The translations under genes were made by a program, and so were the position numbers. Of a stretch of 64,000 bases of DNA, positions 10,021 to 52,988 are shown piece after piece. The notes under the pieces are model-generated. The model was given only the letters and a program-made list of their open reading frames with translations, was not told the origin of the DNA and searched no databases. The stretch lies in assembly GCA_964247055.1 (NCBI GenBank), contig OZ176054.1:11222001-11286000 (forward strand). Reading direction: 5' to 3'. The DNA is from Paragordius varius. Its lineage: Eukaryota > Animalia > Nematomorpha. Each line of letters opens with the position of its first letter. Position 1 is the first letter of the stretch.

Positions 10021-10278
10021 GGTATATCTCAATTAATAAACCAGCATTGGAAAACAGCCTAATACTTTTAAACAATATTTCATACATTAGAATAATTAAA
10101 ATTTTTAATCAAAAAAATGTTTCGTAACTTATTTCCCAATATCTTCACATATAGGGGTCGATCCATTTAATTGTAAAAGCATGTTTGTTTTCAACAAATT
10201 TTTGACTCTTTCAACCTCAAAATCGGTAATTAATGTACAAAGTCGCACCCTATATATATATATATTTTTTGATTGTTG

Positions 10279-11420: not shown

Positions 11421-11769
11421 TAATTTGATGGATATTTTGTAATATTAAATTTTGAGAATATTATAGCAATTTATGTTAACATTTGTAATATTGTTGTTAC
11501 GTATTTAGATGCGGAATTTTGTGGGTTTTTATCTTTGATAAATTAATAAATAGTAAAATACGTATTTTAAGATTTTTTATGTTAATTATTCCTAAAAATA
11601 ATAAATATTTTTCAACATGCTAAATACCTGTATTAATATTGGTATTATAATTTTATATGTTATTACTAATTAAAAAAACACAAGTAAATATATATTTGTG
11701 AAAATTTAAGTAGATTTTAGATTTTTGTCTTTTATGTTTTGCATTGTTAATTATTAATAATGTATTTCA

Positions 11770-23668: not shown

Positions 23669-24549
23669 GTGTGGAAAAAAAAATTTAATATGATAGATTT
23701 TAATGATGTGTTTGATAATTTTGCAATATCAAAAGCCAGAAAATTTTTTTGAAATATTTTTTCTTAGTTGCCTCTTTCCATTCCAAATAGTAAAATCTCA
23801 TTAATATACTTAATATTTTACGGATTAAATAAATCGCATTACATAAATTGTCATAATTTTTAATTCCGTTAAAATCTGTATTGTAAAATTAGCCCAGATT
23901 TACAATTATTTTTAATCATTATTGTTCGCCATTATCATCCATTCAATATATGCAATTAAAATCAATGTCTATTATTTTTATAAATATAATTTCAATATTA
24001 TAGTTATTAGAATATTTACATGTATGTATTTGAGTATGAATAAATTTAGTTTCATATATATATATATATATATATATTAAGATTTAAAATTTATATGACT
24101 GTGATGTCTTATCTATGGTTAGGTTGCAATGTTTTAGTGGCTTTCAAAAAAGGAGAGGGGCGCCAAAAGAATTTTATGCCCCGGGCGCCGCAAATGCTCG
24201 GTACGCCACTGATAAATTATATTTGAAATTCTCGAAACACTTTTGCATTTTTTTGAGCAGGTAATTCAAATTTTCACCCCTTTAAAACTAGTGTTTAATA
24301 TTATGGTTTATATGAACCTATTTATTGATAAAGTTGCGCATTTGCGAATTAGAAAAATAATGAAAGCGATTTTTAACATATTTTACGGCAATATATATGA
24401 TCAATTTTGAATTAACTTTAGACCCAATTGTTTAATATAAAAATAACTTTAAATTCGACAAATTTATTTATTGATATAAATGATGCATAAATCACATGAA
24501 TGATTAATCCCTGAAGCAAATTAATTTTTAAGAATTGATGAATTGCATA

Positions 24550-24593
24550 TTACTTATCGTCACCAGAACCAGAACCAGACCAATAATCGCTTG
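24550..24593 (-). CDS. Tentative exon 14 (Ser-Gly tail)
   Basis: TTTTAG acceptor; in phase 1 it reads (T)[20 protein letters not shown] at 24553 could instead be a donor. Confidence 0.4.
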
Positions 24594-27500
24594 CTAAAAG
24601 TTAAATATAAAATATATTTTAAAGATAAATTATCGTCGACATATTTCGATTATAAACCAGCCCTAAGTAGTCTTGGAATTTTAAGTTCGTCTCTCACTAA
24701 TTTGTTGAATGATAAGGATAATTAGTTAAAACTTCTTTAGCCCGCTTTTGTTTTCTGCCTCATTCAAACAGAGATTAAAAAATATCTCTTTGGTATTAGG
24801 ACAAATTAGAAATATTTTTGAAACTAATAAAATCACAAAAATATCTCAAATTTTAGGCTGCCAAATTTTTCCATTTTTTGTTCAATCATCATACATTAAA
24901 AACTTAAAACAATATTATGGTTAAAAATGCTCTTGATTATTTAGACCAATTTTATTCTTATAAACTTAAATATAAATTTTTTTATAAAACCCATTCTAAA
25001 CTAAAATTGATTTTAGTTAATAATAATCATTGTGGAACCAATAAAGCAATTACAAAAAAAGTTTTCAATGACTTTATTGGATGACGGAGCATTTTAAAAC
25101 TTTAAGGGGATTAAAAATAGATTAATATACCATTTACATCTCCTTAAACACTTCAATTTACCCTCCAATTTAAATTCACCCTAAAATAAATTATGTCTTA
25201 ATTTAACTAATTAAAGGTATAGTTTTTTATTTTTTGATGTTATTTTTAAACAAAGTTATATTTAAGAAATCCACAATAAAGTATGTGATTTCCAAAAACA
25301 TAATTTACTAGGGTATTTGATATGTTTAAGGGTAAATTTGAAATGTTTAAGGATGAATTTGAAGTGTAAATGGTAATAGACTATGTGCAAAATAATTTTT
25401 AACAAAATATTTTTTTTTCGATGAAATAGCTTATGACCAGCGTATTCATTTCCCAATTTTCATTTGTTTACGACCTAATTTTTGAAATATTCAGATAAAA
25501 ACGAAATCGGGCAAAAAGTTAAAATTAGGATTATTAAGGGTAATTGGAAAAAAAAATGATAATAGTTGAGATATTATGGATTATTATCCTTTTAAGAGAT
25601 ACTTTCAATATATATAAATAGCCTAAACTCATAAAAATCAGGTTTCTATAAAAACTCATTTCAAAAAATGACGTTTTTCTTTTAACACACTCCAAAGACA
25701 AAAAAATTTCATGAAACTATACTATGATAATTTTTGATTATTTACTAGCTAAGCTCACAATTAAAACTTAACATTCATATTTATTCAGTAAAAATAACTT
25801 TTAAATATTGTTTATTTCATTTTTTGTCATCTGGTTTATGACGGTATAAAATATTTATACTGTTTGATTTTTGAATCTTACATTAATGGGAGTTAAGTAT
25901 ATAATTTATGCAAAATAGGATTTAAAAGTAGTGGAACATTAACCAACAATCGCTACAAATCCCAGTAACAAGTTTGTTTTAACACAAATTAATATTTTTA
26001 CTGGGATATGTATGGATTTTTGGTAGATTTTCCACTACTTGTAAATTTAATTTTGCATTAATTTATATACTGTGAAATTCCAAAATAAGATTTTTTATAC
26101 CATCATAAACCAGATGACAAAAAAATGAAAAAATTAAAAACAATATTTTTTAGTTTTATTTTGATATATGGAAGTTTTTTTAATAAATAAAATAGAAGTA
26201 GCCAGTAAATAAAAAATTTTAATGTTTTCATTTTTCGTTTTTTAAGTGTGTTAAAAGAAAAACGCCATGTTTTGAACTGAGATTTTATATAAACTACCCT
26301 ATTTATATGATTTAGGATATTTATAAATTAAATCCCCTTGATAAAAACCATGAAACTTTTATCATTATTTTTTTAATTCTTAATTTTCACTTTTTGCCCG
26401 ATTTCGATTTTCTCTTTAATTTCAAAAATATTAAAATTTTTGTGGCAAATCAATTCACTGGTTATCTATCTCATAAAAAAAATTTCTATCGTTAAAAAAA
26501 TAACCCTCTTTTTTGCACACGGTGTATATATTTTGACAATATTGAAAAAAATTATAGAAATTAATTTCATAAAATCTAAAAATAAGACATATTATAGCTT
26601 ATAACTTACTATCTAACATTCCAGTTTGAACCAATTCATATTTGCTTTTGGGAAATTTCGCAATATAAGGCAAATTAAATTTGCAATGTTTTTTTGTAAG
26701 ATTTTCATGGTGAATGAACGAGTATAGACAATACATCTTGTAATTTTCATGTTCAATTTCATGAAAACAGGCTTTTGACCAAATTAATGATTCTTTTGTT
26801 CTTTCTTGCTCTAAAAAGGTCCAAAAATATTTATACCCAATAATAAATTGTTTTACAGAAAAAATTAAAGTTTTACATAAATAATAAGCATTATTTATCT
26901 GGCTTATTCACACATTATAAATAGTAGAGTGTACGGGAAAAGACAAAAAAAATGTAAAACAAAATACACAAAGTAATTTAAGATAGGAAAAAATTGTTTA
27001 TTCAACATTTAGTTGTTTTTTTCATACATTAACAAGTGTGTTGTCAATGTACCAACTGTAATGTGAATAAGCCAGCATTTAAATGCATACTGTAATAAAT
27101 ATGAAAAAAAAATATCAAAGTTATCTAAATTAAAAAAGGGAAAGAATTTTAAGGAATCGGTTATATGATCATATGATTTATGTCGTAAAAGTTAGACATT
27201 GTATAAGAAAAAAAACATTTAGTTTCAGAACTCTGAAATGTTTTGAAAGAGTATCTAGGAGTAAAAACACAAAGGCATAACCCACATAAACATTTTTTGA
27301 TCATTAAATCCAAACTCAAATTTGAATTCAAAAAAATGGCCGTCTAACTTTTCGATTATCTTTCATAAACTTGACTCAAACGTATAAAAAATTAAATCAA
27401 ACCATGTGCAAAGGGTCGTCATCAAAACGAATCTACCAACCAGTTATTTATGTTTAAAAACAGTTCCTTTATGGTTTATAAACCGAATCAAAATTACAAA

Positions 27501-28294
27501 AGATCATCAAAAAATTTCCAAAATTAAAACAAACCCTTTACAAATTTTGTTTAAAAAAACCCGAAAAATAATTTCCATTATTTTACATGTATATGTATAT
27601 ATATCTTACGAATATAAATAAATCCATCAAAAACTACAGTAGAGTTATCTTTAGAGGTACACATGACACTTTTATTATTATGAGCAAATTTGGCCACAAA
27701 AGACTTCTCCCAGATATATCCATTTGTATCGCGGTATAAATAAGGCTGATTGTCATAGAGATATTTGCTATGGAGTAGGGCTTGATCTTCGTTAATCGTT
27801 ACTTGCACATAACAGTCCGTAATATTAACGGTTATGTTAAAATGTTTTCTAAAGTCTTTTAGCGATTCCATTATGTTTGTACCGTATTGAAATTGTAATT
27901 GGGCGTTATAATTGTGTTCTAATAACATAAGCTTCTATTAAAACATGCACGTAAATGATAATAATATATCATTTGCACCTTCATTAGATATATTACGCCG
28001 ATTCAAGTTGGTGATTAAACATTTTAAGCTTTGATAAAAAAACAATGCAAAAATATTATTCCTACTGAAAAATGATATCTATTTTAAGATATTAGATTAA
28101 TTTTCCACTTATAATTTTTTTAAAGCAACTTAAAAAGTTTAAAGACCTTAATTACTTGCGCAAATGATATATATCAAAGTCGATTAAAAATAATGGCATA
28201 AACGCCTAGAAAATTGAAATTATGGCTGATAAAATATTTTAGAAAAGATAAAGTATAGAACAATTTAAAAAAATTAAAATTATTACCAGCCAAA

Positions 28295-28325
<31 letters not shown>

Positions 28326-31300
28326 ACAGTAACAACTGAAATTATACATTTTGGTTAAAATTAAATCCATTTTTTTTCTCCTATATCAGACAAAACTTGG
28401 GAATTTTTGCATTTTAACTTCTAAATTTCTAAAATGAGATACCTCCAAAACCAACCTTGATATTAAAATCAATTATATCGAAAATTTTCTAGTAAATTCT
28501 AATTGATTTTTAAAGTTAGTCCAATAAAAATATTTAAAGATATTAAAATTTTAAATTTCAATACCAGTTCATAGAGAATTACTAAAAAACCTAGTGATGA
28601 AAATGTTTGAATCATTAAAAAATAGAAAATGTTTATAATATCTTAAAGTGTTTTTATATCGTTTCTACCCTACTTCAACATAAAATGCATTTAAAAATTA
28701 AATAAAACGTATGATTTTTTTCAAACTTTTTTCGATTTCATCATCTATCATTTAAGAATTATTATCGCGCAATCTAAAAATTTTTGCGTTTTTTAAAAAT
28801 AAATAACCGCTTTTAGAGGGACCAAAAAATTTTAGACTCTAGGAGTAAATAATTAATCAAAATTTATAGACAACCTTGCTTTTTGAATGTAAATTATGTT
28901 GTATTCAAACAATGTTTTTTGGATTAATGCAGTTAGATATACGAAAAAAAAACTCTATGAATGTGCGCTGATTTTGCTATTTTTGATATCGATCCACAAG
29001 ACAAAAGTATTTAATTTATCCTTCGTTAGCCCCAAACTTAGCATGAGAATTACACATTAATTTATCATTATGAGATAATATATAGTTTATCAGGTTAAAT
29101 ATCCCGATTTTCTGTGCACTGAGATTAATAGGAGAATACATTGCAATATTTTACTTTAAATTGGGTAAAAATTAAAGTTTCCAATGAATTTGGATGCAAA
29201 ATATATTTTTGTCTCGACCACAAAATATTTTGAGTTAAAAATATTCTCGAGATTATCAAAATATACCACATTCGACCCATAATTGATATAAACACGTCAA
29301 ATAAAACTTACTAGGCGTGAACGGTAGATATTTGTCCACGAAATCAATCTTCTTTTCTAAAATATTAAAAAAAATTGTAATATGCATTGTAATTATATAT
29401 TATATATGGAATTATTTTAATTAATTTGTAATGATCACTCATAATTTTTATTTTTTTATTTTATCTGTGATTTGGCTAGGGTTAGATTTTTGGGTCAAAA
29501 ATAAAAACCGGTTTAAAAAATTTTAAATTTTTAGATGTGGGCTCCAAAAGTCCCAAATTTTTTCCCTAGTAAAATGGGCTACTTCTCTAAAATTAAGCTC
29601 ATGCCTGGATTGAGCGATAAAAATATACTTTAAAAATGATGTTTTAAAAAAATTTAATTTTAAATCAAATTTTGTTGAAGCGTACTTCATACTCTTGTGA
29701 GTCATATGGTTTAAAACTATTTATGATATTATGAAAACACCTTTTCATTAGATTTCGATAATTCTGAACATTTCTATCACCTCAAAATCGTGATATTTGA
29801 AATATTAAAATTTTAAGCAATTGAACCTTAAAATTTAAATTCTTAGGTAATAGAAATGTTCAGCATCATCGAATTATATACGTTGTTAAACCGTTTCTAT
29901 TAAGACGCCAAATAAGTACGCTTCAAAATTTTACTATGAATTTTTAAAAACAAAATTTTTGGTTGATATCAAAATTAAGCATGTATTTATAATTTTTATC
30001 TCGCACGGGCATTTTTGCCTTTATTTCAAGAGGATTAACCCATCTTAGAAAAAATTTAGGACTTTCGAACTCACATCTAAAATATTAAATTTTTTAAACC
30101 TATTGTTTTACTTTTTACATATAGTTATCATATATTTTATTAATATTTTTTAAGTTTTAAACTTTCACCCAATAAATTTATTTAAAAATGAACGTAATAG
30201 CCATTTTCCGATATGAAAGACTTACCACAAATTGTAAATAAATTTCCCAAATAAAACACCATGATAATGTTTATACATCCTATCAATACATATTTTTTAT
30301 AGGGCTTTTTGTGGAAACTGTGTATATTGTTTTTATTATTTTGTTATTCAATTAAAAATCGCTGGGGCACATTCAATGACAAACAAATCATAGATTGATT
30401 AGGGAAATTGATACTCAAATATTAAATATTTATATCATTGGTTAAAAATGATACAAAATACCCTGTATATTTTGGGAAAGTATAATATAATTACCTTGTA
30501 TATATCCATGTTCGGCTAAAAATGCTTGGAAATCAGGCTTGGAATTTTCAGAACTATCTTTGTCCAATGCATCAAATCCAAAGATTTTGTTATCCTAAAA
30601 TATAATCTTAAAAAATAACTCTGGATTCATATTTTATAACGAATTTGGAATAACTAATGTCGCAATAAATTTTATAGATTTGATTCAAATATGCTTTTTT
30701 GACAATTGGTTGGTCAAGTATTTTGAAGTTTCCGATTTGCAAATAACATTTCTGTTTATCCCATCTGATTGGGAAGGTTTCCCCCTCATTAGCATATACC
30801 ACACTTTTACCTAATAGTGAATACAAATGATTAAGCAAATTTAACTCATTTTAATTTCTGGCACCAATATTATAATCGGTCTGTAAAATTTTTTTATCTT
30901 ATTACATTTTACGGTCCAAATTATATGATGATACGTTATTATACATGAAAAAATTCCATTGTTACTGAAAACAAAAATTGTAAATTTAATTTTTTTATTT
31001 ATAATATGGTTGAATCTTGTTTTTACAGTGGACAATGGTATAAAATAACCCCTTTATTTCAAAAATATCGTCTATAAAGTAATTAACTCATGCTGATGTT
31101 ATTTGATGAATAAATCTCTACAAACTCTGGAGTTTGTAGATATTTTGCATGCACACACAAAAAATGACAAAATACATATTATCTGATACAAAAATATATC
31201 AGGGTTCTCAAGTACTATTTAAAACTTACAATTTTGTATTCGAATCGCAAAACTTGCGCTCATTATGTAAATATATTTTTTTACATCATTCATTAGAAAG

Positions 31301-34300
31301 AAAAACAATATTGATCAAATTTTAATTCTTTTATGTGGGATCCGATAGTCTCAAATTTCTGACCGCCTTTAAGACTAACGCCAAAATTTAAAGATATTCT
31401 GATAAGAATATTTAATACTGGGAGATTATGAAAAAAGAATATATTTTTGGAAAATATATACTTTTATTTAAAAATTTAATTTTTAGTAAAATTTGGATAA
31501 ACCACATTTTATGGTGTTTTGGAGCACGGTAAAGCGGTCCGGACATATTATAAATGCTTTCTTCTTCATATAAATTAAATATAAAGTGAGTTGTACCTAG
31601 ATTCCAAAAAAAACTTTTTGAAAATGGATAATAGAAATGTTAATCATTATCGATTGATATGGGAAAGGTGTTTTTTCCCCGCTGTGAAGATCAATGCGTT
31701 ACGGGTGGGTAGGGATTGCCTTGACGGCAGGTGGCCGACGATCTTCCGACGCTACACCCTTTACTTGTTGTTATGTTACCATGCTTTTAAATACCATAAA
31801 GTACGGTCACTAAAATTTTGCTAAAATTCAAAATTTTAAGCAACGTTTCATTGCATTTTTTTATAGATTTTAATTTTTGATGTGTTATAATCTATATTAA
31901 AATTTAGTGTATTTTAAAAAAATTAGCCCGTTTTAGAGGGGAATTTTCGACTTTCAGAGGCTGCGTCTAAAATCATAATAAATATTATATATTTTTTTAC
32001 TTATAAATATAGTTTATGATATAACAATGGTATATTTAGAATGAATTAGATTTTAACAGAAAACTTTATTTGATAAAATCTGGGCTAATTTTGTGCTGAT
32101 ATGGATTACCGAAAAAGTTGAAATATTTTTATTAAATACTAAGTCGCAAAACCATAAACACTATGATAATATAATATACCATTTACAGTTCAAATTCACC
32201 TTTGAACAATTCAAATTCACCCTTGAACAATTCAAATTCACCCTCGAACAATTCAAATTCACCTTCAAACAATTCCAATTCACCCTCGAACAATTCAAAT
32301 TCACCTTAAAAATTAATTATGATTTTCGAACTAATATAACTAATTATTAATATGAAATATATGTTTATGGTATATTTTATTATTTTTTAAGTATTATTTT
32401 TATTGAAAACATAATTTTTATTTTTTAAAAATATATAGAATATAGGTAATTTTTAATCTTAAAAAACTTATATTTTTTTGAGGGTGAAATTGAATTGTTC
32501 GAGGGTGAATTTTAATTGTTCAAGGGTTAATTTGAATTGTTCAAGGGTGAATTTGAATTGTTTATGGGTGAAATCGAATTGTAAATGGTATATATCATCT
32601 ATCATATTAAAATATTTTCTATAATTGATTTCATGCATGCGTAATGAGTCAATTAAAAGTTAAATTAAATCATTTCTTTATATTCTAGTCATTTCCGTGG
32701 AATAATATTAAGTATAAATAGGAAATATCTGGATATAAAACAATAATTAATAATTTCAATTTTAATTTATCTAGAGAAGTCGTGATATGAAAAGTAAGCA
32801 AAGTATTTTTTCATGCACCTAATAAAATACAAAAAAACACAAGACCACAACATACCATTTTGCGATCTAAAAATATGGCTTAACCGCTACAACCCTAAAA
32901 TAAACTTTAAAATTGGCAGAGTTGATTAAATTTTTAAAAAATTATGCTGCATAATTAACTTTTAGACGAAAACTAATCTTTCTTTTAGCTCAACAACATT
33001 TTAAAAGATTTACTTCAAGTCTTGTTATATATATGTATTGACAAGCAATTTAAATGCATACGGTAAAATGTTTAGTGTCTTTCCCTAATTTTTAACATTG
33101 TTCGTATATTTTTAACGTTGCTTGTTTTTATCATTTTGAGAAAATTTAATCAGCCCCATTTACTTTTGAATTATGTTATTTTTTTATCTTTTTTTGCCCT
33201 AAAAATTTTAATTTGTAATTTCAACAGAGTTTTAAAATGTAGAATGCTTAGTATTAGCAAGTTCTTATATTAAAAACATAATTAACCAGTTAACCTGAGA
33301 TGGTAAAACAAAGAATATGAATTTTTAAACTGATGCTTTAAAGATTATTTCCAAACCAATATTATAAAATATTCTTGATTATATATTAAAATCTGATATT
33401 TCATTTTAGACGCTTTACTACATCATAAAGGCCGAAGCTTCTTGAAACACAAAGTTATCAGTTATGGGGTTTATAATTTATGAATCAAAAATTATAAGCC
33501 AATTTGATTCATAAATAACCATGTAATAGCGAAAAATGTCTGCTTAAGACAGTTTTTTATTTTCCTTGTTAAAGGCAATGAATATGCTTTATTTTGTTTT
33601 CAATTTTGACAATGTCTATTACACCCTTTTCTATTGCTATCAGCCTTTTTATCTGGTTATTTCATATGCTTGTGCAGAATAATTAAAGTTACCCAATCTG
33701 ATTATTCCTTTAAATTCAACACGTTGGTTTGTTTCATTTTTGTAACATACAAAATGTCTATCCATATGTCTATATTCAACAATTTCAGTGCGCTCATAAA
33801 TGGTATAATTATGTTTATAACATTTGTCTTTTCCAGTTTTTTTGATGCCTGTGAACAACGTATTCGAACTAAGATTCCTATAGTCGTCGAGCACATTAAT
33901 GTAGCAATTATAGTTTGAAAGTTTATCTCCCCGCTTTACATAGTGAGATTTATTCTCTAAACATGATATACGATTATAAAAATGTGAATTCAACTAATTT
34001 ACATTACAAATTAAGTATAAAAAATATATATTTGGTCGCTATTTTTTAATGTTTATATTTATAATAAACGATTTTAATATCGTGGTATACACAAAATATA
34101 CAAATTTTCGGGTTTAAATAATCCGATAAAATAAACTTTGACGCATTTTAATTAATATTTTTTATAATTTTTTTAAAAATGTTTAATAGATCATATTAAA
34201 ATTAAAATTATACGGGCAAACATAGATTATTTTTTTATAAAACATAACCATATTTTTTAATAGCCTTTTGGGTGCATTTTAAAAAATAATTTTTAAACGT

Positions 34301-40300: not shown

Positions 40301-43300
40301 GAAACATTAAACATGTAACATCAGTTCCCATCATCCAAAAACGAACGGAATGGTGGAACGAGTAATATATACCCTAAAAACATTATCGGTCAGCAGAAGA
40401 CGGTGACCCACAATCAAAAATAAATAACAGGCTTTGGGGATACCGCACTAACATACACAGTGCTACAAATACATGTCCCGCTCTGCTTTTCCTAAAACGT
40501 ACCCTACCCAATCCAATCACATGACTACAATATCAACAAACAGACTTCTTAGACTATGTACAACCGAATCACAAATACCATGAAAACGAAAAAGTATACA
40601 TAAAAAATGAACTAGCAAATGGTTGGCGAGAAGGAATTGTAAATAAACGACTCGGAATACTCTCATATGAAATACAAGATGATAACAAAATCATCCGAAA
40701 ACCCGCCGACCAACTGAGACCAAGGGAAGGAGGTAAAAGAATAATGGGTAAGACATTTCTCCCGAAACCCCACCATCGCATGACTTATATGTTAGGTACC
40801 CTACTGCCACCGAATCCCCGACATTACCTCCACCCCAACCCTCGGAACCCATCCTTGAGTTGCCATCCCAACAAACACCCACTATAACACCTACCACTGA
40901 CACTCACACAGAACGGCAATACCCTACACGTATCCGACACCCACCACATAGATATCAGGGACAGAGAAAGAGTGATGTTAGGTTAGATCCTACTGTCGTA
41001 GATACAAACGCACCTATATAATCGTAATCACTTATAACTCTTTGTGATACACTAATGTGACCAGATATTAATAACCCTGACACAGTACAAAATTAGATAC
41101 TTTGCCTATTTTTTGCTTAAAAGCTCATTAGAAACAATTGAAAATATCCAACAAATAAATTTATGGTCCAGTTCCATTCGATTTTGGCTTAAAATTTTGG
41201 ATTATTCCAATTCTATTTTTGAGTTTAATATAAAATATTTGTTGTGTGTGTGTGTCTGTGTGTGTATGTGTTTAATATTAAAGTAAACTCAAACAAAATT
41301 TTATTATGCTAAAACTTATATGAAACAAAAATGAATTTACAAAACTTGATTAAATTACTATAAATTTATTTTGTATTTATTTTAAATTTAAAATCGCTTT
41401 TGCTAAAGCCCGGAGTGAAAGGGCCATTAGCCTAAATCTAGAGTCTGATATTTATAGTTCCGCCACTGCGCAAATTGGTGCATTCATAAGCGATTTGATC
41501 GGTCCAAAACCCAATTCCGTGTATATGCAGAAAATTAAAATTCTAAAAAGGCTATACTTTTTTACCGCAAAAGGAACCATTTATTTTAACAAAGGGTACT
41601 CTATCAAATTCTACAAAAAAATTTTTTTAAATAAAAGGTAATTAAGACATATAAAAAAATTTATAAAAGCAGTACAAAAGTCAGCGCAGTACAGGCGCGG
41701 TTTTTTTTTCGAAAACCCAGTACTGTACTGCGAAAAACAGCCTATCTGGTCACTTTATGATACACCTAGTTAATGTTAATTGATGCTTCAAGCAAAATAG
41801 TTATTATATAATTGCTGTATTATAATATCATACACACATGTTTGATTTCTGGTATTTAATAAATGTTTTCTGTATAATACAACTTTACTTCTTTCAGTAT
41901 CCAAAAAATATGAGTTATGCCGAACCTGATGGCATAAATAAATTTATATTTATGGTGATAATAATTTACGTTTATATTCGAGTATTTGGTTAATTAATGT
42001 TTTTTAAATATTAATTTCTAAAAATTTTATAAACAACAGCAGATAGTTAATGAATGCTAATAATTGTTTGATTTTAATGTTATTGTCTAAGTCAGAGTAT
42101 TATATAAAAAATTTATGACAATATTGAAAAAATATATATAGATATTAATTTTATAAAATTAAAAAATAAGACGTATTATAGCTTAAAACATACTTTTTAC
42201 CCTTCCACCTTGAACATATGCATATTTGCTTTTGTTAAGTATTGCAATATAAGGCAAATTAAAATTGCAATGTTTTTTTGTAAGATTTTCATGGTGAATG
42301 AACGAGTATAGGCAATACATCTTGTAATTTTCATGTTCAATTTCATGAAAACAAGCTTTTGACCAAATTAATGATTCTGTTTTTTTTGCCACTAAAAAGA
42401 TCCAAAAATAATGTTTAATATTATTCAATGTTAAATGGATTGTTTTACAGCAAAAAATAAAAGTTTTATATTTAATAAGCATTACACTGGACACCAAATT
42501 CTTCTGCCACTCGAGTTTTGCATTTTCTGGTATTTAGTATCATTTTAACAGTAAAATAAAAGTTATAACTCCACGTAAGAATTTTGTATAATTTGAGTTT
42601 TTGATTATACGCCCTCTTTATCAAAATTCTACTAAAAAATGTTTTTCTTTGAAAATATACAAGTAATGTCCATTTGTTATCATTCGAAAGAGTAATAAAA
42701 ACTCTATAAAATGCATACTAATATGTTTTACACCGACAGTTAATATTAGACATAGAGAGCGACAAACGCGCGAAGCGAGAGCATTTTTAATTAATATATT
42801 TTAAAACTAATGGATGAAAATAGCTTAAACTTTGTCTAGATGGTGGTGAATGTCCAAAAAAGAAAACAAAAAAAGTTTTTTTGATTAAAACATTTTTTAA
42901 TTGTTTTATGTCACATTTTTAAGTTTTTTGTTTTTTAAAAATTACCATCTCATCAATATTAGTTTATTTTCTTTGCGAGGCTGATAATTTGGAAATTTTA
43001 AAGATAAAAACAAAGTTTAAGGTATTTTTGATCTTATATTCATTAAGTAATAAATTTACAGTTGTAACTATGCATTTTAGTATCCACTAGGTAAAAGATT
43101 TATGATAATATAATTTTTATTAATAAAGCACACCAAAAGCTTTTTCATCATTTTTTTAAAATCTAATATATATATTATAATAATTTATATGATTTTCAAA
43201 TTAGTTTGTTTGTGAAAATTTTTAAGGGTTGAAAATTTCGATCATATAAACCCAAATAACTTATAGATTGTTATAAATGACTTAATATCATTTGTATGAT

Positions 43301-46300
43301 ACAGTTTTTCACACTCTTTCGAATAATATAAAATACATGGCTTCATATCTAAAACTTTTAATTTTCAAAATTTCGAGTTTAATGTTAAATTAAGGCCAAA
43401 AATTACAGATAAACTCTAATATAAAAGATTCTTAGGTGTTAGACCAATTTTTTTTTCAGATATGCTAATTATGTACTTTAATGAAATAAATTTACAAGAA
43501 TGGCAGTTAAAAAGAATCAAAATTTGTTGTCTAGTGTTATTTATCTGGCTTAATAACGCATTATCAATCGTAGTATGGGGGAAAAACAAAAAAATGTAAA
43601 AAAATTACATAAAATAAAGTAAGATAGGAAAAAATTGTTTAATCAACATTTAGCTGTTTTCTGCATACACTAAGTGTGTTCAATGTACCAAATCTGAATG
43701 AGACAGCATTAAAATGCATACTGTAATAATTAAAAAAAGTATAAGGGTCTCATTGAAACGATAAATCTACCAATCAGTCATACATTTTAATATTTGTATT
43801 CGGTTCTTTTAAGATTTGTAAACCGAATCAAAATTAAATTCCCTAATTAAAAAATTTGATTATCTCCAAAATTAAACATAAACCTTACAAATTTCTAAAG
43901 AAAAACACAAAAAAATAATTTTATGCAGTTTAAATATAATTATATATATATGTATATATATATATAATATCTTACCAATATTAATAAATCCATCAAAAAC
44001 CACAGTAGTGTTATCTTTAGAGGTACACATGACACTTTTATTATTATGAGCAAATTTGGCCACAGATGACTTCTCCCAGATATATCCATTTCTATCGCGG
44101 TATAAATAAGGCTGATTGTCATAGAGATATATGCTAAGGGATAGGGCTTGATTCTCGTTAGTCGTTACTTGCACATAACAGTCCGTAATATTAACGGTTA
44201 TGTTATACAGTTTTTTGAAGGCTTTTAGCGATTCCGTTATCTTTGCACCGTTAGCCATATATAATTGGGCGCTATAAGTGTGTTCTAATCAAATGAAGTT
44301 ATATTACACACATACGTCTATACTATATTGTTTACACCTAGAATTGGTTTTTTAATACTTCAAGGTGGCCCTTGAAAAAAATATTGTTGGACGGCAAGAT
44401 GAAAAACTGAGATATGACATTTAATAAATTATTGTTACATAAACAAACGTGTTAGGCATTTTTAAGTTTACGACCAACTTTAATACCTATGATGTTGTGT
44501 CAATCGGGGTAAATACAATTTTACATAAGAGTTTGCACAAAACCTGATCAATATGTTCTGATAGATAATTGGGTGCCTTTGGTCATGCTGTAAAGAGTAA
44601 AAAATTTTAAAACTTACTCTATATAAAACCGCAATAGCACACGCTATGATTATTTAAAAAATAACATTTAAATTATACATAAACAATATTAAAAATCAAG
44701 AGTATGTTTTAACATGATTGGAGCTAGTAAAGTTTTAAATTTTAAAGCTCTCTACTATGGGCTAGTGTTCAAATAATCGCAACGAGATTGCACGATAATA
44801 TTTTCTAAGATAATCCAAATAATGTCATCAAAAATTTTTATTTTAAAAACTCATAATACATTAAAAAATTAATTTTAAGCAAACTTAAAGCGTATTTTAT
44901 GGTTGAAAAATACGATAACATAAAGTTTAAGATTTTTAAATTAAAACACTTTTTTTATATCGATTATGCTCAATACATAACCTCAAATATTTTATTAAAA
45001 GATGTATGACTTTGAATCTAATCTAAATAGATTCGGAAGTAATATTAATTAAATTGACTTAAATGACGACATTTAAAAAATCCAAGTTTGTTCATCATCA
45101 AATTATGCAGAAAAGTTGTAGTGATTATCTTTAAATTTTATGCCGTTCTACCATACTACTTCAACATGCATACCATCGATTATACTTTAACAAAACTTTG
45201 TTAATTAAACTTAGTATCCATGCATTTTTTGACTTTTTTACGTCATCCTTTATTTAAAATATAGTATTGCGCATTCTGGAACTTTTTGTGTTTATTTTTT
45301 ATAAAGGATCACAAAAAATAGTTTTAAGAGCTATCTTGTATTAAAAATTGAGATAAATATAACATTGATTTATGTAGTAAGCTAGCACTTCCCAATTATA
45401 TAGCATGATGTGCTAAATAATTTTCTCATTTTTCGATATCTAGTAATAAGTATAGCACTTTGAGATACTTTATACATATATTTATGAGATGATATATAAT
45501 TTATCAGGATATAAGTAATGAGAATGTATTATTAAAATTCAATTTAAATTATAAAATGTACAAAATATTCCCATGAATTTTAAGGAAAACTACTTTTTTA
45601 AGATATTTCTTTGGCCCCGAAACTTGAGTTAAAAGGGCTTTGCATCTTATTTAACATACCCAAAATATTATACAATAATACAAAAATAAGTTATGCTTAC
45701 TTGGTTGGAAAGGTAGTGTTTTGCTTCTCAAAATATCAATCTTCTTTTCTAAAATAATATATAATGATTAACAATATGCATTTTAATCTAACATAATCTT
45801 ATAATTTTCGGGCTAAAACTTTATAAGCATTTAAAATATAACCAATTACCAAATTCTTTCATAGTTATAACCAATAATGTTATTTTAATTTGTTTAATTT
45901 ATTTTATATTTTAAACACGGTTGTTAGATTTGGATACAACACATTCATTTCAGTACTTCGAGTCAAATTGGGGTAGTTGCAGGCCTGGTTAAAAATATTT
46001 AATTCAAAAATATGGAATGAATTGTAACCATGGAAAAAATTTGCACCCATATAACGTTAATGAACCCAAATATATAAAAAAGTTCCATCAAAAATACTGA
46101 TATTACTTATTTTAATGTAAAACCGCAAGGTAAATTAGTCATGGGTGTGCATTACCTAAATTTAAATATAATAAAAGAAACCACTTATTATAATTCTATC
46201 ATTGTTTGTGTTATAAATGATAATTAGCTATATTCATGGTGTAAAAATAAATAAAGACGATATTTGAAAATATGTTGCAAAATAAAAATGGCGTCGAACT

Positions 46301-49283
46301 AATTTAATATGAAACTTTTTCCAAAAATAATTTATTTGAATATTTCGGCTTGTTTATATAAATTTATTAAGATAGAAGCATAAAATTAAATTAACACCGG
46401 TTCTTTCATTAATTTTTTAAAATATTAACTTAAATATAGTCTGGGATATTTAGATACCTTAATTTTAATCTAAGTGTTAATAATAATAGGGGGTTCATCA
46501 ATCATGCATGCAGTCAGTATCCCTACAAATGGTTACAACAAAATGGAGTAATTTGTTTAATTTAGATTTAAACTTCTTCCCTATTAATATGTTATTGTTC
46601 CATCTAACATTATAAACTGTCGTTTTGTATGTTTAGCTTAAACCGCGAACTGTATCAAAATTTTATTTAAATGATTAAAATAAGGGTATTATGACATTAT
46701 AACTATACAAATTCTTAAACACTTGGATACAACACATTCATTTTAATCCTTCGCAAATTGAGGTAGTTAAATACCCCAGGCCTTAAAATTAAATTCTTCA
46801 AAAAATATGGAAGGAATCGAAACCATGGCAAAATCTTGCACTTATATAACATTAATAACAGAAATATATAAAAAATTTATTCAAAAATATTTGATATTAC
46901 TTATTTAAAGTTAAAACCGAAAGGTAAAAATTTAGTCAACGTGGCATGCGTACACTGGTAAAATTGAAAAATAATAAAATATACATCTTTTTCTATTTCC
47001 ATAATGTTAGATGTAGTTTAAATAAAAAATTAGCTTTTACCCTTAAAATTAAATGAAGACGATATTTTGCAAAAATTTTGTATAATAAAAATGGCGTCGA
47101 AGAATTTTGACAAGGAACTTTTTTTTCAAAATTATTCAAATATTTTGGCATATTTATATAATTTTTATTAGGATAGAAGCACAAATTTAAATTGGGCCCG
47201 TTTCCATATTTTTTTAAAAATCCTAACTCAAATTTAATCTGGGATATTTAGATACACCAATTTGAATCGAAGTTTTAAATTCTTAAAATGTTGTGGGATT
47301 CATCTAATGACCACAGAGTCCATCTATGACTTTTTTATCCACTATTTTCCGGATCTATCGCTTTTTCGCTCACCTTCAACGGTATTCAATATGATTTTTA
47401 AAATCATAAGCCTACAAATATTGTTGGAATTGTTTTATTTAAGAATGTACCACGCTGATGCACAATATTTAGCTGGTCACAAGGAAAAGTTTTAGAGATT
47501 TTCAAAACTTGGAATATGATTTTGTGACGCCTCGTTAATTTATACAGAGGCATATGAGCTGAAACATAGAATTCTATGTAAAAAATTGGAATAAAGAATT
47601 ATAAAATTAATGTAAGCGTTTTATGGCAGTTTCCAGGCATCACAAACGGCGCAACGCTCGAGCTGAAAAAATTTAATTAGTAGAAAGAAATATCAATAAA
47701 ATAATTACAATTTGATTAATTAACAGTCTGATAATTTTGTATATATACTCTATGTACACCCTGATAGATAAAAGTATCCGAACTCTCATAATGCTTTTGG
47801 GTTTGCTCTTTGCAAAAAATATAGGAGAGTTTATAGTACTTTTCTGGTAACTCTATAACAAATTGGCGAATTCAGCGGATATTTTTCTAAATAAAAAATT
47901 TTTGGTGAAAGCTAAATTCTTCATCCCAAAAAATATCAAGAAAATATATCATGAATAATGTAAAAAGTAAATCAATTATAAAATTTATGATATCTGTGGG
48001 TTCAGAAAGTTTGAATTTTCAACACATCCAAAATGGGCATTTCTTAAACTAAACGCAATAATGCCAATATTGCGCAAAAAGTTAGATATGTGCTAATGAC
48101 ATAAAAAAATTTTTTTCGAAAAATTGGGTATTTTGCTTAAAAATTATATTTATAGCTAGCATTGGTGAAGCAAAACCTATTTTGAAGCATAGTGGAAACG
48201 GAGTAAAAACACTTTAAGATATTATGCTAACATTCATAACATTATGTTAAAATTTCTATCATCGCAGATTTTTGATTAAAAGTGATGCACTAAATTTTTG
48301 CGCTATGTCGGCATTTTTGTGTTTAGTTGAGGAACTGCCAAATTAGACGGGTCCAAAAATTTGAGATTTTTGGAAAACACATCTAAAAATTTATAATTTA
48401 AAATGTGTGTTTTACTTTTAAGTTAGTTGATATACATAAAATTTCTTAAGCAAAATATGCGCAAAATTCGCTACTCTCTGATATAAAGTTACCACAAAAG
48501 TAGTATTAATCTTTTTTTTAAGGCCCGAAACCAAAAGCAGCGTGAGAATCCAGAGATATTGATCTATTATTAGAAAGTCTATATATTTCATCAGGATATA
48601 TTTTATGCCCCCGGATTTTGTGGGCAGTGTATATAGGAGGATGATAACTACATAAAGTAGAGTAGTTTGATATGTTGGAAGTTGATATTATGGGAAAAGA
48701 ATGATCGATAATATAGTTGAATAAATTGCGACAATATTTGAATATAGAATATTCATAAAATAAAATATGGGGACATGTCCAATTGTGTTGTGATGGTATG
48801 TTTTATGAATATAATATATATAATAACAATTGGAGTAAATTGGTAATCTTCATATGCTTCAACATCAACAATTTACCTACAAACTTTTATAAGTAAAGAT
48901 CCCGTATTAAAAAATAATGTTGTAATCAATCAGCATATGTTATAATTAATCTAACAAATATGAAGCTAAATTAATAAAATTTTTACAAACATTTCGTATT
49001 TAAATATAATCTAAAATGGTCTAAATGATTTACACACACGTCTTAAGCTTCTACAATCACCAAGCGCAAATTTGCGTTTTTTCGCTAAAAATAATTATTT
49101 ACTCATTGCAATTAAAAGAGACACATGCATCCAAAGTACCAGAACGTTAACCTAATCGGTACGTAACATATATCGTTTTGGGGAAAAAATGACAAGCAAA
49201 ACCAGTTTATGACTTTAAGCAAATAATTGAACCAGGTAGATAAAAATAATACATGTATATTGATATTGAAACGTATAATGTTT

Positions 49284-49338
<55 letters not shown>

Positions 49339-52300
49339 ATTACCTTTGATATTGCCATGTTCAGCAATAAAAACTTCTAAATTAGAGGTAAAATTTAGTG
49401 TTCTGGAAGTATCTTTGCGTAAAGCATCATATGCAAAAATTATATTATCCTAAAGTAAAATATTGCAAATTAACTCTGGATTCATATTTTATATCGAATT
49501 TGGACATACGAATGTTACAATAAATTTGATAGGTTTGATTGAAATGTTCCTTTTTGAGAATAGGGTTCTCATCATAAACAACGCTAGAGTTTCCAATTTG
49601 TAAAAAACATTTAAATTTTTCCCATGTTATTGGAAAAATTTCCCCCTCTTTCGCATATACATCATGTTTTTCTATCATAAATTAAATTGAATTAGTAAAG
49701 CCGAAAGCTTATTTAATCGATAAATCTCGATAAATTAATAGCTATATTCAATATTTTAAAAAATCTCGATTTTATTTAAACCTTAGGCCACCAGTTTCTT
49801 TTAATTTCAAATAATTGTGAAAATTTTAACATTCGATTGTAAATATCAGCAGTTACTTAATTTAATAATGCTTGCAACAATTTGGGTTTTCTCATTGTAA
49901 CATATAACTGGTCTATCCATATGTCTATATTCGGCAATTTCACTTTGTTCATAGATAGAGAAGTTTTGTTTATAACATTCGTGACATCGAAATTTATTTA
50001 AGAAGTTTTTAAACAATCGATTTGAAGTCTGATTTCTAAGATCGTCTAGGACTTTGATATAGCATTTATGCTCCGAAAGCCTATCTCCCTTCTTTACATA
50101 TAAGAGTGAATAAGTATCTAAAAGTTACGATAAATAAAATGTAATGATAACCAAATTTATTATTGGATCAATTAATTTACAATTCAATACACTGTGAAGG
50201 CGAAAATAATAACCAGATATAAAATATATATTCTGAAAAATAGATGTTTTATGAGTTTAATGATACTTTCGGTTGAGCCTAACGAGTGATTTAAAATTAA
50301 AACCATTTTTGTTGTCACTGCCTTATATCGCAATATGTGCACATTATGCCGATTAAAATGGTGTAAGCTAAATGCTTCATTTAAAAAAATATTACTAAAA
50401 TATATCATAAACTATATAAATAATTTTTATAAAAAATTTAAAATATAAAATGTCTCAAACTTTTGGAACTAACCGCAAAAATGCCGTACGCGATTATTTA
50501 TTTAATATGTGCTAAATTTTGACATCAAAATAGTTTTTCCCGAAAAAATGAATATTTTGCTGAAAAATTTATTTTTTAGCAAAATTTTGGATAATTCGTA
50601 TTTTAAGAATGGTGGAAACGGTATATAAACACTTAATGATATTGTAAAAAATTCTTTTATATATTATTTGATAATGCTGCACATTTTTATAATATCAGGA
50701 TCTTATTATAGAATGTGTATGACTTTAAATTTTAAATGATTTTTTTGTAACAAAAACTTATTATTCTTACATAAACATTTTGAATCAAAATTCTGAGGTA
50801 AATTTTCTGCATCATCAAATCATATAAGGGGTTCTCTCACATCGTTTCCACCTTCATAATACCAAAAAAATTCAGATCATCAAAATTTTGCTTTAATTAA
50901 AAAATCCACTTTTTAGGAAGCATTTTTTATGACAAAATTTATTACATGTTTAAAAATTTTATCGTTTTTTTTTGATTTAGATTAAAAAATTCCATTTTAG
51001 ATAAGTTTAAAATTTAAGGCTTTCGGAGTTCACATCTAACATTTAAAATTTATAATGCATTTTTAGTTTATGATATAGCGATGTTTTTGAAATAAAGCAT
51101 ATAGCTTTCTCCAAAAAATTATAAGTATGTGCTTAAAATTTGCCATATAATGCAGTTACTACAAAAGTGGTAATAACTTTTACATCCACTTATAATACCC
51201 AAAACCAAAAGCACCTTGAAATTCCTGATACATATATTAATCTAAATAATTTTAGTGTGAGCTGTGTATATTTGTGATGGAATAATTTTATGTAATAATC
51301 AATTTTTTTAAAAACTTATATAAATTGAATATACCTTCATGTATTATCTTATATAGACATAAAAATGGCTACTTTCTATTAGACAATGAGGCATAAACGG
51401 CTTAAAAAAAGTTTTTTATTTTAAAAGTTTATTAAAAAAATTTATTTTATATGTATGCTTCAAACATTCACACCACCTCATTTGTATGATAAGGCGCGCT
51501 CTTTGCTTTTGATACAAAATCTTTTTCGATGATATATTAACAAAATTACATTTTTAAGATAAATTAATCAAAAATATTTAAAAAGAGATTCCTTTAACTG
51601 CCACGATATCAATTATTATCTTAAGTCGTTAACACACAGTTGTTTGATCAATACTTTTTTAACCCATATATATTTCCTTAGTAAACAATCTACAAAATAA
51701 TTATTAGCATTTAAAACATATTTCGATTTTGTCGCTTTGTAAAGAACCTTATAGTTACTATTTATTTAACTATATATTGTAAACATTACACAAAAAGTGT
51801 CAATTCAAAGATACTCACCTTTATTACATTATAAATAAAATATTTAATGGTATGATAAATAATTACCAAAGGTTATTTTTAATGTCATGTTGCGAAGATT
51901 TCTAAGTTTGGATATTCCATTATCTAACATATGAATAAATTTCAATCATTAAATTTTATTAACACTTCGATCAAGGTTTATAATGCTATAAGAATATAAA
52001 GCATATGATCTCAATTTAAAGCTTCAATTACAATAAAAATAATTATATATGGCTAATTATCTATGGCTAATTATCTATCATGAACTCTCCTCATTTATTT
52101 CGAATTATTTGGGGCGTTTTTATGAAAATGGATATTTATTTGAAAATTCAGATTTTGAAAATGTTTAAATTCAAATTTTTAAACATTTTTTTTGGATAAA
52201 AGTCGGAAATCAAAAATCTAATTTTATTACATACGCATCAAGCTAATTTAAAAATTATTATATTCAAACATTTTTTCATCATTTGTGCATGGAGCGAAAA

Positions 52301-52988
52301 AATATTGACTCAAAGCGTGTTTACACAAAACTTATTTTGACCAGAATTTACCCTAAAATTATTAACAAAAATATTAATTATTGGTGTAATTTCATCCTCT
52401 ATAACATAAATATATATGGATCAGGCTTTACATGTAATCTAAAGACACATTGAGAATAAATAGGACTCGATCTATGCATAATTATATAAAGAACATGGAA
52501 AAAGAAATAAAGTTCTCCCTTAACCGTAATTATTATCGTTCAGAGTTTGGTTTAAAAACTCTAACTTGACAAAATTGGTAAATTTATCAGTGTAAAACAA
52601 TTTATATATCGACGCTGTCAAATTATTTTCTTTTAATAAAATATATGGTTGTTTTTTTAAAAAAATACAACATTTGTATAAATATATCATCTCTATGGAA
52701 ATTAAGGGTCACTTGACCATATATATAAAAGCACCCCAATTAATTAACAAACATTTAAAAGGTCATTTATCTATAAATATGGTGATTTTATCTGTTCTAA
52801 AATTCCATTCAAAAATTAATAAAGCGATAATTTACTATTAAAATTATATAGTGTAATTACATGGAAAATGTTTGTTAAATATATTTAAAATTATTATTAC
52901 TTTTTCGTAAGGCATTTTCACATTTATAGGGTCCCAATATACATGCAACAACAATCAATAATGTGTTAATCAGATAAATTTTAGCCAT
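24550..52988 (-). CDS. Hand-built 14-exon gene: secreted or surface glycoprotein with two tandem Cys-paired (Ig-like) modules, ~797 aa
   Basis: Complement join of 52901-52988, 51867-51923, 49857-50117, 49475-49671, 49344-49449, 43976-44284, 42194-42391, 35417-35485, 33693-33956, 30620-30810, 30495-30594, 27610-27918, 26610-26810 and 24550-24593. All junctions are GT-AG, phase-compatible and stop-free; total 2394 nt. The last exon and the module1-module2 join are the least certain parts. Confidence 0.65.
25125..25375. mobile_element. MITE with TACCATTTACA termini (decayed relative of 32174-32593)
   Basis: ATATACCATTTACA ... TGTAAATGGTA, with degenerate AATTCACCC / GGGTGAATT subterminal units. 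Confidence 0.65.
25430..26465. mobile_element. Palindromic MITE, eroded member of the 36072-36813 family
   Basis: Inverted arms AAATCGGGCAAAAAG / CTTTTTGCCCGATTT and TTTGTCATCTGGTTTATGACGGTATAAAA / TTTTATACCATCATAAACCAGATGACAAA. Confidence 0.78.
26610..26810 (-). CDS. Exon 13 (module 2, exon f)
   Basis: [72 protein letters not shown] acceptor, GTAAGT donor, 201 nt, phase 1-1. Paralog of exon 7. Confidence 0.8.
27610..27918 (-). CDS. Exon 12 (module 2, exon e)
   Basis: [12 protein letters not shown]...ITDCYVQV...[26 protein letters not shown]. 309 nt, phase 1-1, GTAAGA donor; same length as exon 6. Confidence 0.85.
29515..30100. mobile_element. Old foldback MITE-like element; boundaries approximate
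   Basis: Inverted pairs TTTTAGATGTG / CACATCTAAAA, GAAGCGTACTT / AAGTACGCTTC and CTGAACATTTCTAT / ATAGAAATGTTCAG. Confidence 0.65.
30495..30594 (-). CDS. Exon 11 (module 2, exon d)
   Basis: [33 protein letters not shown]. 100 nt, phase 0-1, CAAG|GTAATT donor. Paralog of exon 5. Confidence 0.78.
30595..30619 (-). other. Predicted 25-nt intron (module 2)
   Basis: GTTATTTTTTAAGATTATATTTTAG. Removing it joins KYESR to DNKIF in frame; retaining it gives a stop. Confidence 0.6.
30620..30810 (-). CDS. Exon 10 (module 2, exon c)
   Basis: [27 protein letters not shown]...[17 protein letters not shown]. 191 nt, phase 1-0. Paralog of exon 4. Confidence 0.8.
32174..32593. mobile_element. Foldback-type MITE with inverted arrays of a 21-bp unit
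   Basis: Termini ATATACCATTTACA / TGTAAATGGTATAT. About 6 copies of TTGAACAATTCAAATTCACCC on the left and about 5 inverted copies on the right. Confidence 0.85.
33693..33956 (-). CDS. Exon 9 (module 2, exon b)
   Basis: [24 protein letters not shown]...[28 protein letters not shown]. 264 nt, phase 1-1, GTAACT donor as in exon 3. Confidence 0.85.
34450..35315. mobile_element. Old degenerate foldback element; boundaries approximate
   Basis: TTTGGGGTACTTTTGTACC near 34455 versus GGTTACAAAACACCCCAAA near 35300, with weaker internal inverted matches. Confidence 0.45.
35417..35485 (-). CDS. Exon 8 (module 2, exon a)
   Basis: [27 protein letters not shown] acceptor, G|GTAATC donor, 69 nt, phase 1-1. 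Loosely similar to exon 2 (MTLKITF vs MLNFTINIR). Confidence 0.65.
36072..36813. mobile_element. Palindromic MITE with perfect 18-bp TIR CACTGTGCGCAAAAACCA (Transib-like terminus)
   Basis: The left end at 36072 and the right end TGGTTTTTGCGCACAGTG at 36813 are exact inverses, and the arms stay similar for >100 bp. No matching TSD was found. Confidence 0.85.
36911..41896 (+). mobile_element. Second degenerate Ty3/Gypsy LTR retrotransposon, intronic and antisense to the Ig-like gene
   Basis: 5' LTR 36911-37115; 3' LTR 40976-41896, interrupted at 41053-41757; 5-bp TSD GTATC. Contains gag knuckles ([27 protein letters not shown]), protease IIDTGSS, RT ([19 protein letters not shown]), RNase H TDAS and integrase VTDNASYF. 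Confidence 0.95.
41053..41757. mobile_element. Non-autonomous hAT element inserted in the 3' LTR
   Basis: TIRs TAATGTGACCAGATA / revcomp TAAAGTGACCAGATA and a perfect 8-bp TSD TGATACAC. The LTR sequence resumes after it. The TIR resembles that of 7115-10020. Confidence 0.92.
42194..42391 (-). CDS. Exon 7 (module 1, exon f)
   Basis: [65 protein letters not shown]. 198 nt, phase 1-1, GTATGT donor. Confidence 0.8.
43976..44284 (-). CDS. Exon 6 (module 1, exon e)
   Basis: [12 protein letters not shown]...ITDCYVQV...[26 protein letters not shown]. 309 nt, phase 1-1, GTAAGA donor. Confidence 0.85.
45930..47255. repeat. Diverged direct repeat, ~530 bp x2 (45930-46457 and 46723-47255)
   Basis: Shared anchors TTGGATACAACACATTCATTT, TGATATTACTTATTT, AATAAAAATGGCGTCGAA, GATAGAAGCA and CTGGGATATTTAGATAC occur in the same order. 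Confidence 0.85.
49287..49335. repeat. (AT)n microsatellite beside the exon-5 donor
   Basis: Pure AT run of about 24 units. Confidence 0.95.
49344..49449 (-). CDS. Exon 5 (module 1, exon d)
   Basis: [35 protein letters not shown]. 106 nt, phase 0-1, AAAG|GTAATT donor. Confidence 0.78.
49450..49474 (-). other. Predicted 25-nt intron (module 1)
   Basis: GTTAATTTGCAATATTTTACTTTAG; same length and position as the module-2 intron. Confidence 0.6.
49475..49671 (-). CDS. Exon 4 (module 1, exon c)
   Basis: [27 protein letters not shown]...[17 protein letters not shown]. 197 nt, phase 1-0. Confidence 0.8.
49857..50117 (-). CDS. Exon 3 (module 1, exon b)
   Basis: [25 protein letters not shown]...[25 protein letters not shown]. 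261 nt, phase 1-1. Absent from the ORF track. Confidence 0.85.
51867..51923 (-). CDS. Exon 2 (module 1, exon a)
   Basis: [23 protein letters not shown] acceptor, G|GTAATT donor, 57 nt, phase 1-1. Confidence 0.6.
52901..52988 (-). CDS. Exon 1 (signal peptide)
   Basis: [29 protein letters not shown] has a basic N-terminus and a hydrophobic core. 88 nt, phase-1 GTAATA donor. Confidence 0.75.

Follow-up and report, generated by a model that had tools for sequence, protein, structure and literature searches.

A window of 64,000 nucleotides (nt) from the genome of the nematomorph Paragordius varius (C5:11222001–11286000, in an assembly of 110.5 Mb and 44 contigs) appears to hold one unannotated two-module gene on its minus strand, which would be one of four tandem copies with one such gene per repeating unit. 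We give this reading a probability of roughly 0.55. The predicted products look like a real orphan family of secreted, N-glycosylated, cysteine-rich proteins that are built from two modules and carry hypervariable exon patches. The new feature of the locus is its pattern of variation, in which exon patches around an invariant core diverge more between copies than the introns do. All gene features lie on the minus strand, and the G+C content (GC) of the window ranges from 22% to 36%.

Gene architecture

The initial annotation of this DNA had joined 14 GT-AG exons without a stop into a protein of about 797 amino acids (aa). When the 14 minus-strand segments, which are bounded by AG and GT and have compatible frames, were joined by script, the frame was indeed open, and its length came to 808 codons plus a stop instead. 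Every junction is in phase 1, save those around two 25-nt introns (49474–49450 and 30619–30595). The joined frame contains 23 cysteines (Cys) and 22 N-x-S/T sequons, the latter in agreement with the earlier count of about 22. Its exons are scattered among transposable elements, which fill the introns, as had also been described. The window has three CAGCTG sites, all of them outside these exons, whose coding sequence totals ~2.4 kb.

A six-frame comparison aligned two collinear sets of coding-type blocks, at 24–36 kb and 41.5–53.5 kb, and exon boundaries were set at conserved AG/GT sites by DNA alignment of five module copies (A2, A4, B1, B2 and C1). The model begins with e1 (52901–52988), which supplies the ATG and a signal-peptide-like sequence in 29 codons plus 1 nt and ends in phase 1. 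Module A opens with its first domain exon, e3 (49857–50117; 87 aa, 4 Cys), followed by e4 (49475–49671; 66 aa, 2 Cys) and e5 (49344–49449; 35 aa). Its largest domain exon, e6 (43976–44284; 103 aa, 2 Cys and 4 sequons), has an invariant core of 35 residues with variable flanks, and its last exon, e7 (42194–42391; 66 aa, 3 Cys), ends at the phase-1 donor AAAA/GTATGT, 8 nt past which the intron has a TAA. Module B consists of e9 (33693–33956; 88 aa, 3 Cys), which has a variable patch in mid-exon, e10 (30620–30810; 64 aa, 2 Cys), e11 (30495–30594; 33 aa), e12 (27610–27918), which is the largest domain exon and is hypervariable between B and C module types, and e13 (26610–26810), which ends at the phase-1 donor GATA/GTAAGT. 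A short terminal exon, e14 (24550–24593; GC 0.43), adds 14 residues and the stop (15 codons).

Exons e3–e7 and e9–e13 are paralogous pair by pair, with lengths of 261/264, 197/191, 106/100, 309/309 and 198/201 nt, identical phases, conserved splice sites and aligned Cys positions. The first pair, e3 and e9, shares 56% aa identity with a ratio of non-synonymous to synonymous substitution rates (dN/dS) of 0.30, and the ratio is 0.48 for e4 against e10 and 0.25 for e5 against e11. Between e4 and e5 lies a GT-AG micro-intron of 25 nt (49450–49474) whose removal is needed to hold the frame, and the module alignment places another of 25 nt at the same site in module B (30595–30619). Reading through it leads to a stop in both modules, and its length is kept in all five aligned copies. 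The donor after the last module exon also falls at the same place in module types A, B and C, and a stop follows 8 nt past it in every module.

Within the module, the C-terminal 37 residues of e3 and e6 align around the second Cys of each exon with the pattern N..I[WY]E.S.[VI]A.[FY].H....V.C (hhalign probability 54%, E = 1.3e-4). The module may thus contain an older internal repeat, seen as this motif; e4 has no significant similarity to e3 or e6.

Four tandem units

Positions 1–11678 of the window are 98.5% identical to positions 52384–64000, because the window spans one period of a tandem array of four units. In the 204 kb around it, eight modules fall into four units, U1 to U4, of ~48–52 kb each; the window holds U2, and the cluster spans C5:11.19–11.37 Mb. 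Every unit runs from e1 and e2 through a module of type A to e8, then through a second module of type B or C to e14; e2 and e8 are two further exons of the 14-exon model. There are four occurrences of e1 in the 204-kb cluster, each upstream of an A-type module, and e14 occurs once per unit (four in total), solely after B or C modules. The e1 of the next tandem copy, U1, is also within the window (518–605), and the remainder of that copy lies to its left. Paralogues were counted, as the initial annotation had suggested, by a genome search with the e6 and e3/e9 domains, which found no matches outside the cluster: the whole 110-Mb genome has 8 modules, in one cluster. The U1/U3 and U2/U4 pairs differ by 0.6–2%, and the U3 protein is the same as that of U2 across e1 and e3–e6 except for one e4 residue and is 90% identical to it in e7.

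Comparison of the tandem copies also separates real exons from chance exons. The reading frame of e2 (52525–52614) is open in the window copy only, and a TAA interrupts it in U1 and U3. In U4, e2 has lost 1 nt and differs at 10 of 89 positions, a divergence like that of its flanks. The similarity of e2 to e8 (35417–35485; 23 aa) yields a BLOSUM score of 36, compared with 35 for the best score in another frame. Exon e8 is itself open, is in phase 1 at both ends and has a good acceptor. Open AG..GT phase-1 segments of 60–120 nt are nevertheless abundant by chance, at ~3.6 per kb of intron, and 77 lie within the gap between e7 and e9. The DNA around e8 is ~99–100% identical between units, and conservation is hence uninformative for this exon.

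Because the e2 frame is broken in the other units, the e2/e8 score is at noise level and similar segments abound by chance, e2 is probably spurious, and e8 lacks support as an exon but may be one. The module that had been described as present twice with matching lengths, phases and Cys positions is so duplicated, but with five exons (e3–e7 and e9–e13) rather than six, since the similarity between e2 and e8 is at chance level. With e2 left out, each of the four units has an open frame of 773–778 aa and 23 Cys. Together with the candidate terminal exon eT discussed below, e2 and e8 look like the chance exons that hand-spliced models pick up in a genome of 25% GC.

Variation between module copies

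Between A and B modules, synonymous divergence (dS) in the first half of the module is 0.5–1.1 with a dN/dS of 0.25–0.48, and this divergence is old and constrained. The comparison of e6–e7 with e12–e13 gives a dS of 0.09 and a dN/dS of ~1.3, and these exons have been homogenized recently.

Between copies, patches of e7, e9, e10 and e12 reach 2 to 40 times the divergence of most flanking introns. In e12, B and C types mismatch at 56 of 309 positions, whereas the introns on either side differ by 2.8% and 7.5%. In e7, A1/2 and A3/4 mismatch at 9 of 198 positions, with 2/1582 and 32/5993 mismatches in the flanking introns. The mid-exon patch of e9 differs between U2 and U4 and includes an in-frame 6-nt indel, and the patch in e10 is similar. 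Within e6 and e12, the 35-codon core has a ratio of non-synonymous to synonymous differences (pN/pS) of 0.11–0.45, and the parts flanking it have ratios of 1.2–1.6. No mismatch separates the 88 nt of e1 in U2 from those in U4, and the flanks of this exon are 10–25% diverged. The analysis of dN/dS and of variation across copies that the initial annotation had proposed therefore resolves constrained exons (e3–e5 and e9–e11) and hypervariable exon patches (in e7, e9, e10 and e12).

Exonic indels between copies measure 3, 6 or 15 nt, whereas only 20–33 of 62–108 intron indel events are divisible by 3. When the same substitutions were placed at random in four exons, the share of trials in which no stop arose was 4.7% (for e12), 37%, 58% and 40%, and these probabilities multiply to ~0.004. 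Because the frames are open where this simulation would often close them and the indels are in frame, the variable exons are evidently coding and under selection for an open frame; the patches that vary within them are either maintained or imported. The largest exon of each module combines an invariant core with strongly differing patches on its flanks, amid near-identical introns. This pattern would fit diversity that is kept or exchanged in surface patches, as might be expected in molecules that face another organism.

Predicted secretion, glycosylation and the 3′ end

The proposed signal peptide is a candidate on hydropathy: e1 begins with MAK and a run of 15 hydrophobic residues (Kyte–Doolittle maximum of 3.3–3.7), and is signal-peptide-like in this sense. 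One of the 23 Cys lies in this hydrophobic region, which leaves an even number in the mature chain. The 22 sequons compare with an expectation of 7.9 ± 2.5, an enrichment of about threefold that was reached in 0 of 5,000 composition shuffles. On this basis, the product would be secreted and N-glycosylated. The sequon excess, the Cys pattern and the lack of any Pfam or PDB match are consistent with the earlier description of an extracellular, Cys-paired N-glycoprotein that is lineage-restricted, duplicating and of no recognizable family.

At the 3′ end, two overlapping AATAAA motifs (24463–24472) lie 78–87 nt downstream of e14. Read in phase, e14 encodes a polar tail of 14 residues without a C-terminal hydrophobic segment. 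Splicing at another AG, 4 nt beyond the first e14 acceptor, would produce a 19-residue tail with a hydrophobic run of 12 residues. In U1, an in-frame 15-nt deletion and a substitution destroy this hydrophobic stretch but leave the polar reading intact, with its stop. Because the polar reading survives in U1 and the hydrophobic alternative is lost there, we suggest, with low confidence, that the product is soluble. A protein anchored in the membrane or by glycosylphosphatidylinositol (GPI) is less likely, given the polar in-phase e14, the loss of the hydrophobic frame in U1 and the chance-level tail of eT.

One gene or two per unit

The two modules are separated by 6.7 kb between e7 and e8, a distance that would shrink to ~510 nt if an insertion block in the gap (35902–42096) were removed. 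This block is present in all four units and consists of inverted arms and a degenerate long terminal repeat (LTR) retrotransposon. The arms, of ~180–200 nt (35902–36080 and 41920–42096), are 87% identical, and no target-site duplication was found around them; their 8 copies genome-wide all lie in the cluster, so they are not a genome-wide repeat. The retrotransposon is Ty3/gypsy-like, lies on the plus strand at ~36900–41930, antisense to the gene, and retains reverse transcriptase (RT), RNase H and integrase zinc-binding and core domains in broken frames. The gap between e7 and e8 is ~700 nt longer in U1 and U2 than in U3 and U4, and in U2 the extra ~700 nt falls within the 3′ LTR copy.

The e7 donor and the e8 and e9 acceptors are all in phase 1. 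According to the initial annotation, a separate first exon between 35486 and 42193 would mean two genes; a scan of 33957–42193 for hydrophobic exons running from an ATG to a phase-1 GT found nothing comparable to e1. DNA comparison with the e1 region likewise revealed no e1 homologue upstream of module B, only AT-rich noise. The best candidate start exon for module B outside the retroelement (41580–41511) was rejected, as its donor is weak and an Arg falls within its hydrophobic run.

We favor one gene per unit because each unit has a single e1 and a single e14, module B lacks a separate start exon, the phases are compatible and the gap is mostly insertion. The transcript would most likely have 13 exons (range 12–14), namely e1, e3–e7, perhaps e8, e9–e13 and e14, and would encode a protein of ~755–808 aa. 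Such a protein would have an N-terminal signal peptide, two diverged five-exon modules of ~360 aa each (A and then B or C, with 10–11 Cys apiece) and a short polar tail. We predict a secreted product that is soluble, rich in disulfides and heavily N-glycosylated, and probably of a fold outside known libraries.

Several observations weigh against this interpretation. The terminal exon e14 comprises only 15 codons and shows no more conservation than the sequence on either side, and we infer the join from e7 to e8 or e9 from its compatibility. On 41950–47949, contigs from the runs X1, X3, X5 and X6 cover introns and exons alike, which identifies these runs as DNA, and runs guessed to be RNA contain none of the gene sequence. 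Overall pN/pS between units is 0.5–1.1, and given these values constraint on the array may be relaxed. Part of the four-copy array could be haplotypes assembled in tandem, because the difference within unit pairs is close to that of a second individual, as which run X3 appears (~2% intronic difference). The fold predictions, moreover, rest on single exons, and the e3 model has a predicted local distance difference test score (pLDDT) of 40.

A division of each unit into two genes is less likely. The first gene would then consist of e1, e3–e7 and the rival terminal exon eT (42004–42086; 27 aa), or would end at the TAA after e7, and the B or C module would be a separate gene. An acceptor 107 nt after the e7 donor opens a 27-codon frame with a hydrophobic stretch, and with this exon the seven-exon model comes to exactly 413 aa and acquires a hydrophobic tail by which the protein might be tethered to the membrane or by GPI. 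The stop 8 nt past the donor of every module also fits such an early end. However, eT has a GC of 0.17, lower than that of the introns (average 0.26) and of the exons (0.27–0.43), it lies inside an inverted-repeat arm of the insertion block, and ~13% of intronic AG sites give at least 27 open codons, so eT is at chance level. For a second gene, neither the gap nor the e8–e9 intron offers module B a signal-peptide exon or an e1 homologue. Furthermore, in all four units A lacks e14 and B lacks e1, as a fusion or an internal duplication predicts.

It is quite unlikely that the modules serve as alternative cassettes (e1 to A or B/C to e14) or that B/C modules are untranscribed donors for patchwise conversion into A. 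Phase 1 is common to all module junctions, and the copies show a mosaic pattern: C1 equals B1 in e9–e11 and is 18% different in e12, and A3/A4 differ from A1/A2 solely in e7. Yet the A modules are nearly identical to one another and contain little imported B/C sequence, and the open frames and in-frame indels of the B/C exons suggest translation rather than a silent archive.

We consider it very unlikely that the array is decaying or was never expressed, either as pseudogenes or as an assembly artifact that multiplies one locus. A pN/pS near 1 between units, the e2 frame broken in three units and differences of about allelic level within unit pairs speak for it. Against them stand 13 exons free of stops and frameshifts in four units, the conserved islands of e1 and the e6/e12 core, sequons enriched about threefold and splice sites kept across old paralogues. 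One two-module gene per unit remains our preferred interpretation.

Family and fold

Homology and fold searches were made exon by exon. Among Pfam profiles, hmmscan with eight exon-containing open reading frames (ORFs) found no match, and none to an immunoglobulin (Ig) family at E up to 1, and single-exon searches of PDB sequences found none either. A feature search of the ESM Atlas and a look-up of the exact protein recovered no relatives. Four e6/e12 domains were also combined into a profile, and a search of 1.84 billion representative proteins with it returned five weak matches; the three examined are the bacterial repeat proteins P0001, P0002 and P0003. The absence of a strong match to any well-characterized family, on which the claim of novelty had depended, is thus borne out: Pfam, PDB sequences and the 1.84 billion proteins are all blank for homologues. 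As the best candidate in the window for an undescribed system, which is how it was first presented, the gene stands only as an orphan family.

An 18-residue core motif of e6 (44130–44060), also found in e12, resembles the blade motif DNQ..LYRD.NG.IWDSY and forms a β-hairpin in the model of e6 described below. The hairpin motif that the query shares with P0001 and P0003 is DNQ..LYRD.NG.IW. We rejected these bacterial β-propeller proteins (P0001 and P0003, with YRDxxGxIWD blades) as homologues: each query domain has a single motif of 20–28 residues, not tandem blades of ~45 aa. Their E values of 6e-7 to 8e-6 arise because five repeats of the bacterial sequences are summed, and the match to P0002 falls in a different segment of the query. 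The likeness between the core and the blades is probably a convergent local motif.

The AlphaFold model of e6 is α+β (pLDDT 69; predicted template modeling score 0.58), with helices at residues 15–26 and 43–53 and five strands; the low-scoring e3 model is unusable. No fold match to the e6 model emerged from Foldseek against the PDB (best E 0.31, template modeling (TM) score ~0.2), from VIA-align against 48,161 chains (Z ≤ 3.6) or from the Atlas (TM ≤ 0.45). The check for a β-sandwich by AlphaFold and Foldseek that accompanied the initial annotation therefore returned for e6 an α+β domain without a fold match, not an all-β sandwich of 7–9 strands.

That annotation had read motifs around the Cys residues as the B- and F-strand contexts of C2/I-set Ig domains, an impression that arose from the C-terminal motif common to e3 and e6, and had taken phase-1 domain exons as typical of the Ig superfamily. 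The phases are as described, but the Ig reading is not supported, and no Ig profile matched. The Cys spacings are 54 (e3), 30 (e4) and 51 (e6) residues, with no Trp ~12–15 residues after the first Cys and no Y-x-C of the Ig pattern D-x-G-x-Y-x-C at the second. A diverged member of the Ig superfamily with C2/I-set-like domains is extremely improbable: recurring Cys pairs, phase-1 domain exons and the C-terminal motif of 37 residues shared by e3 and e6 are outweighed by the blank Ig profile search at E up to 1, an e6 model with two helices of 11–12 residues and no Ig match, and the wrong Cys spacing without the Trp and Y-x-C contexts.

Other repeats in the window

Several repeats lie elsewhere in the window. 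A palindromic insertion (14374–18297) has 1665-nt arms that are 99.7% identical and a 694-aa ORF with an RT domain, and a second LTR-type element (19528–23668) has 209-nt direct repeats of 87% identity and ORFs for RT and integrase. A relic of a hAT transposase, represented by its dimerization domain, is intergenic and upstream of e1 (60250–60780, and again at 8733–9221). High-copy repeats occupy 42350–43550, in the e6–e7 intron, and 45750–47350, in the e5–e6 intron, where summed contig depth is 100–1000 times that of neighboring sequence in all four runs.

Comparison with known systems

The adhesion and recognition proteins of the Ig superfamily (I-set/C2-set) resemble the predicted protein in their modular build, extracellular location and N-glycosylation, and likewise in their paired Cys and the phase 1 of their domain exons. 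It differs from them in the missing profile match, the predicted α+β domain and the wrong Cys context.

In major histocompatibility complex (MHC)-type loci, exons stay diverged while introns are homogenized. The array described here is similar in that its exon patches reach up to ~40 times the divergence of adjacent introns, with synonymous and non-synonymous differences both raised. Unlike the variants of MHC-type loci, however, its copies are paralogues in a tandem array rather than demonstrated alleles, and its protein and function are unrelated.

Among metazoan parasites, Schistosoma mansoni has polymorphic mucins (SmPoMucs; PMC2576457), an example of the polymorphic families of secreted glycoproteins. 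The system predicted here and such families are alike as small, clustered multigene families of secreted glycoproteins in parasites of invertebrates, with patchwise differences between copies and apparent sequence exchange. They differ in that the sequences are unrelated and that the window gene is without mucin-type tandem repeats.

A role at the interface with the host or the environment may be proposed by analogy. In its fullest form, such a proposal would make the array a system of variant molecules in a parasitic phylum that has barely been studied: tandem two-module secreted glycoproteins with a new fold, whose short exon patches beside an invariant core would be kept or made hypervariable by exon-focused conversion or balancing selection, with introns near-identical throughout, and whose in-phase modules would perhaps be alternative cassettes. 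We regard this whole construction as rather unlikely. The pattern beneath it, in which exon variation exceeds that of the introns but leaves a core invariant, is usual in genes under pressure from another organism, and the predicted fold is one that current libraries do not recognize. If expressed, the protein would be a candidate interface molecule, serving as a coat, a secretion or a recognition molecule, in a group of animals whose molecular biology has hardly been explored.

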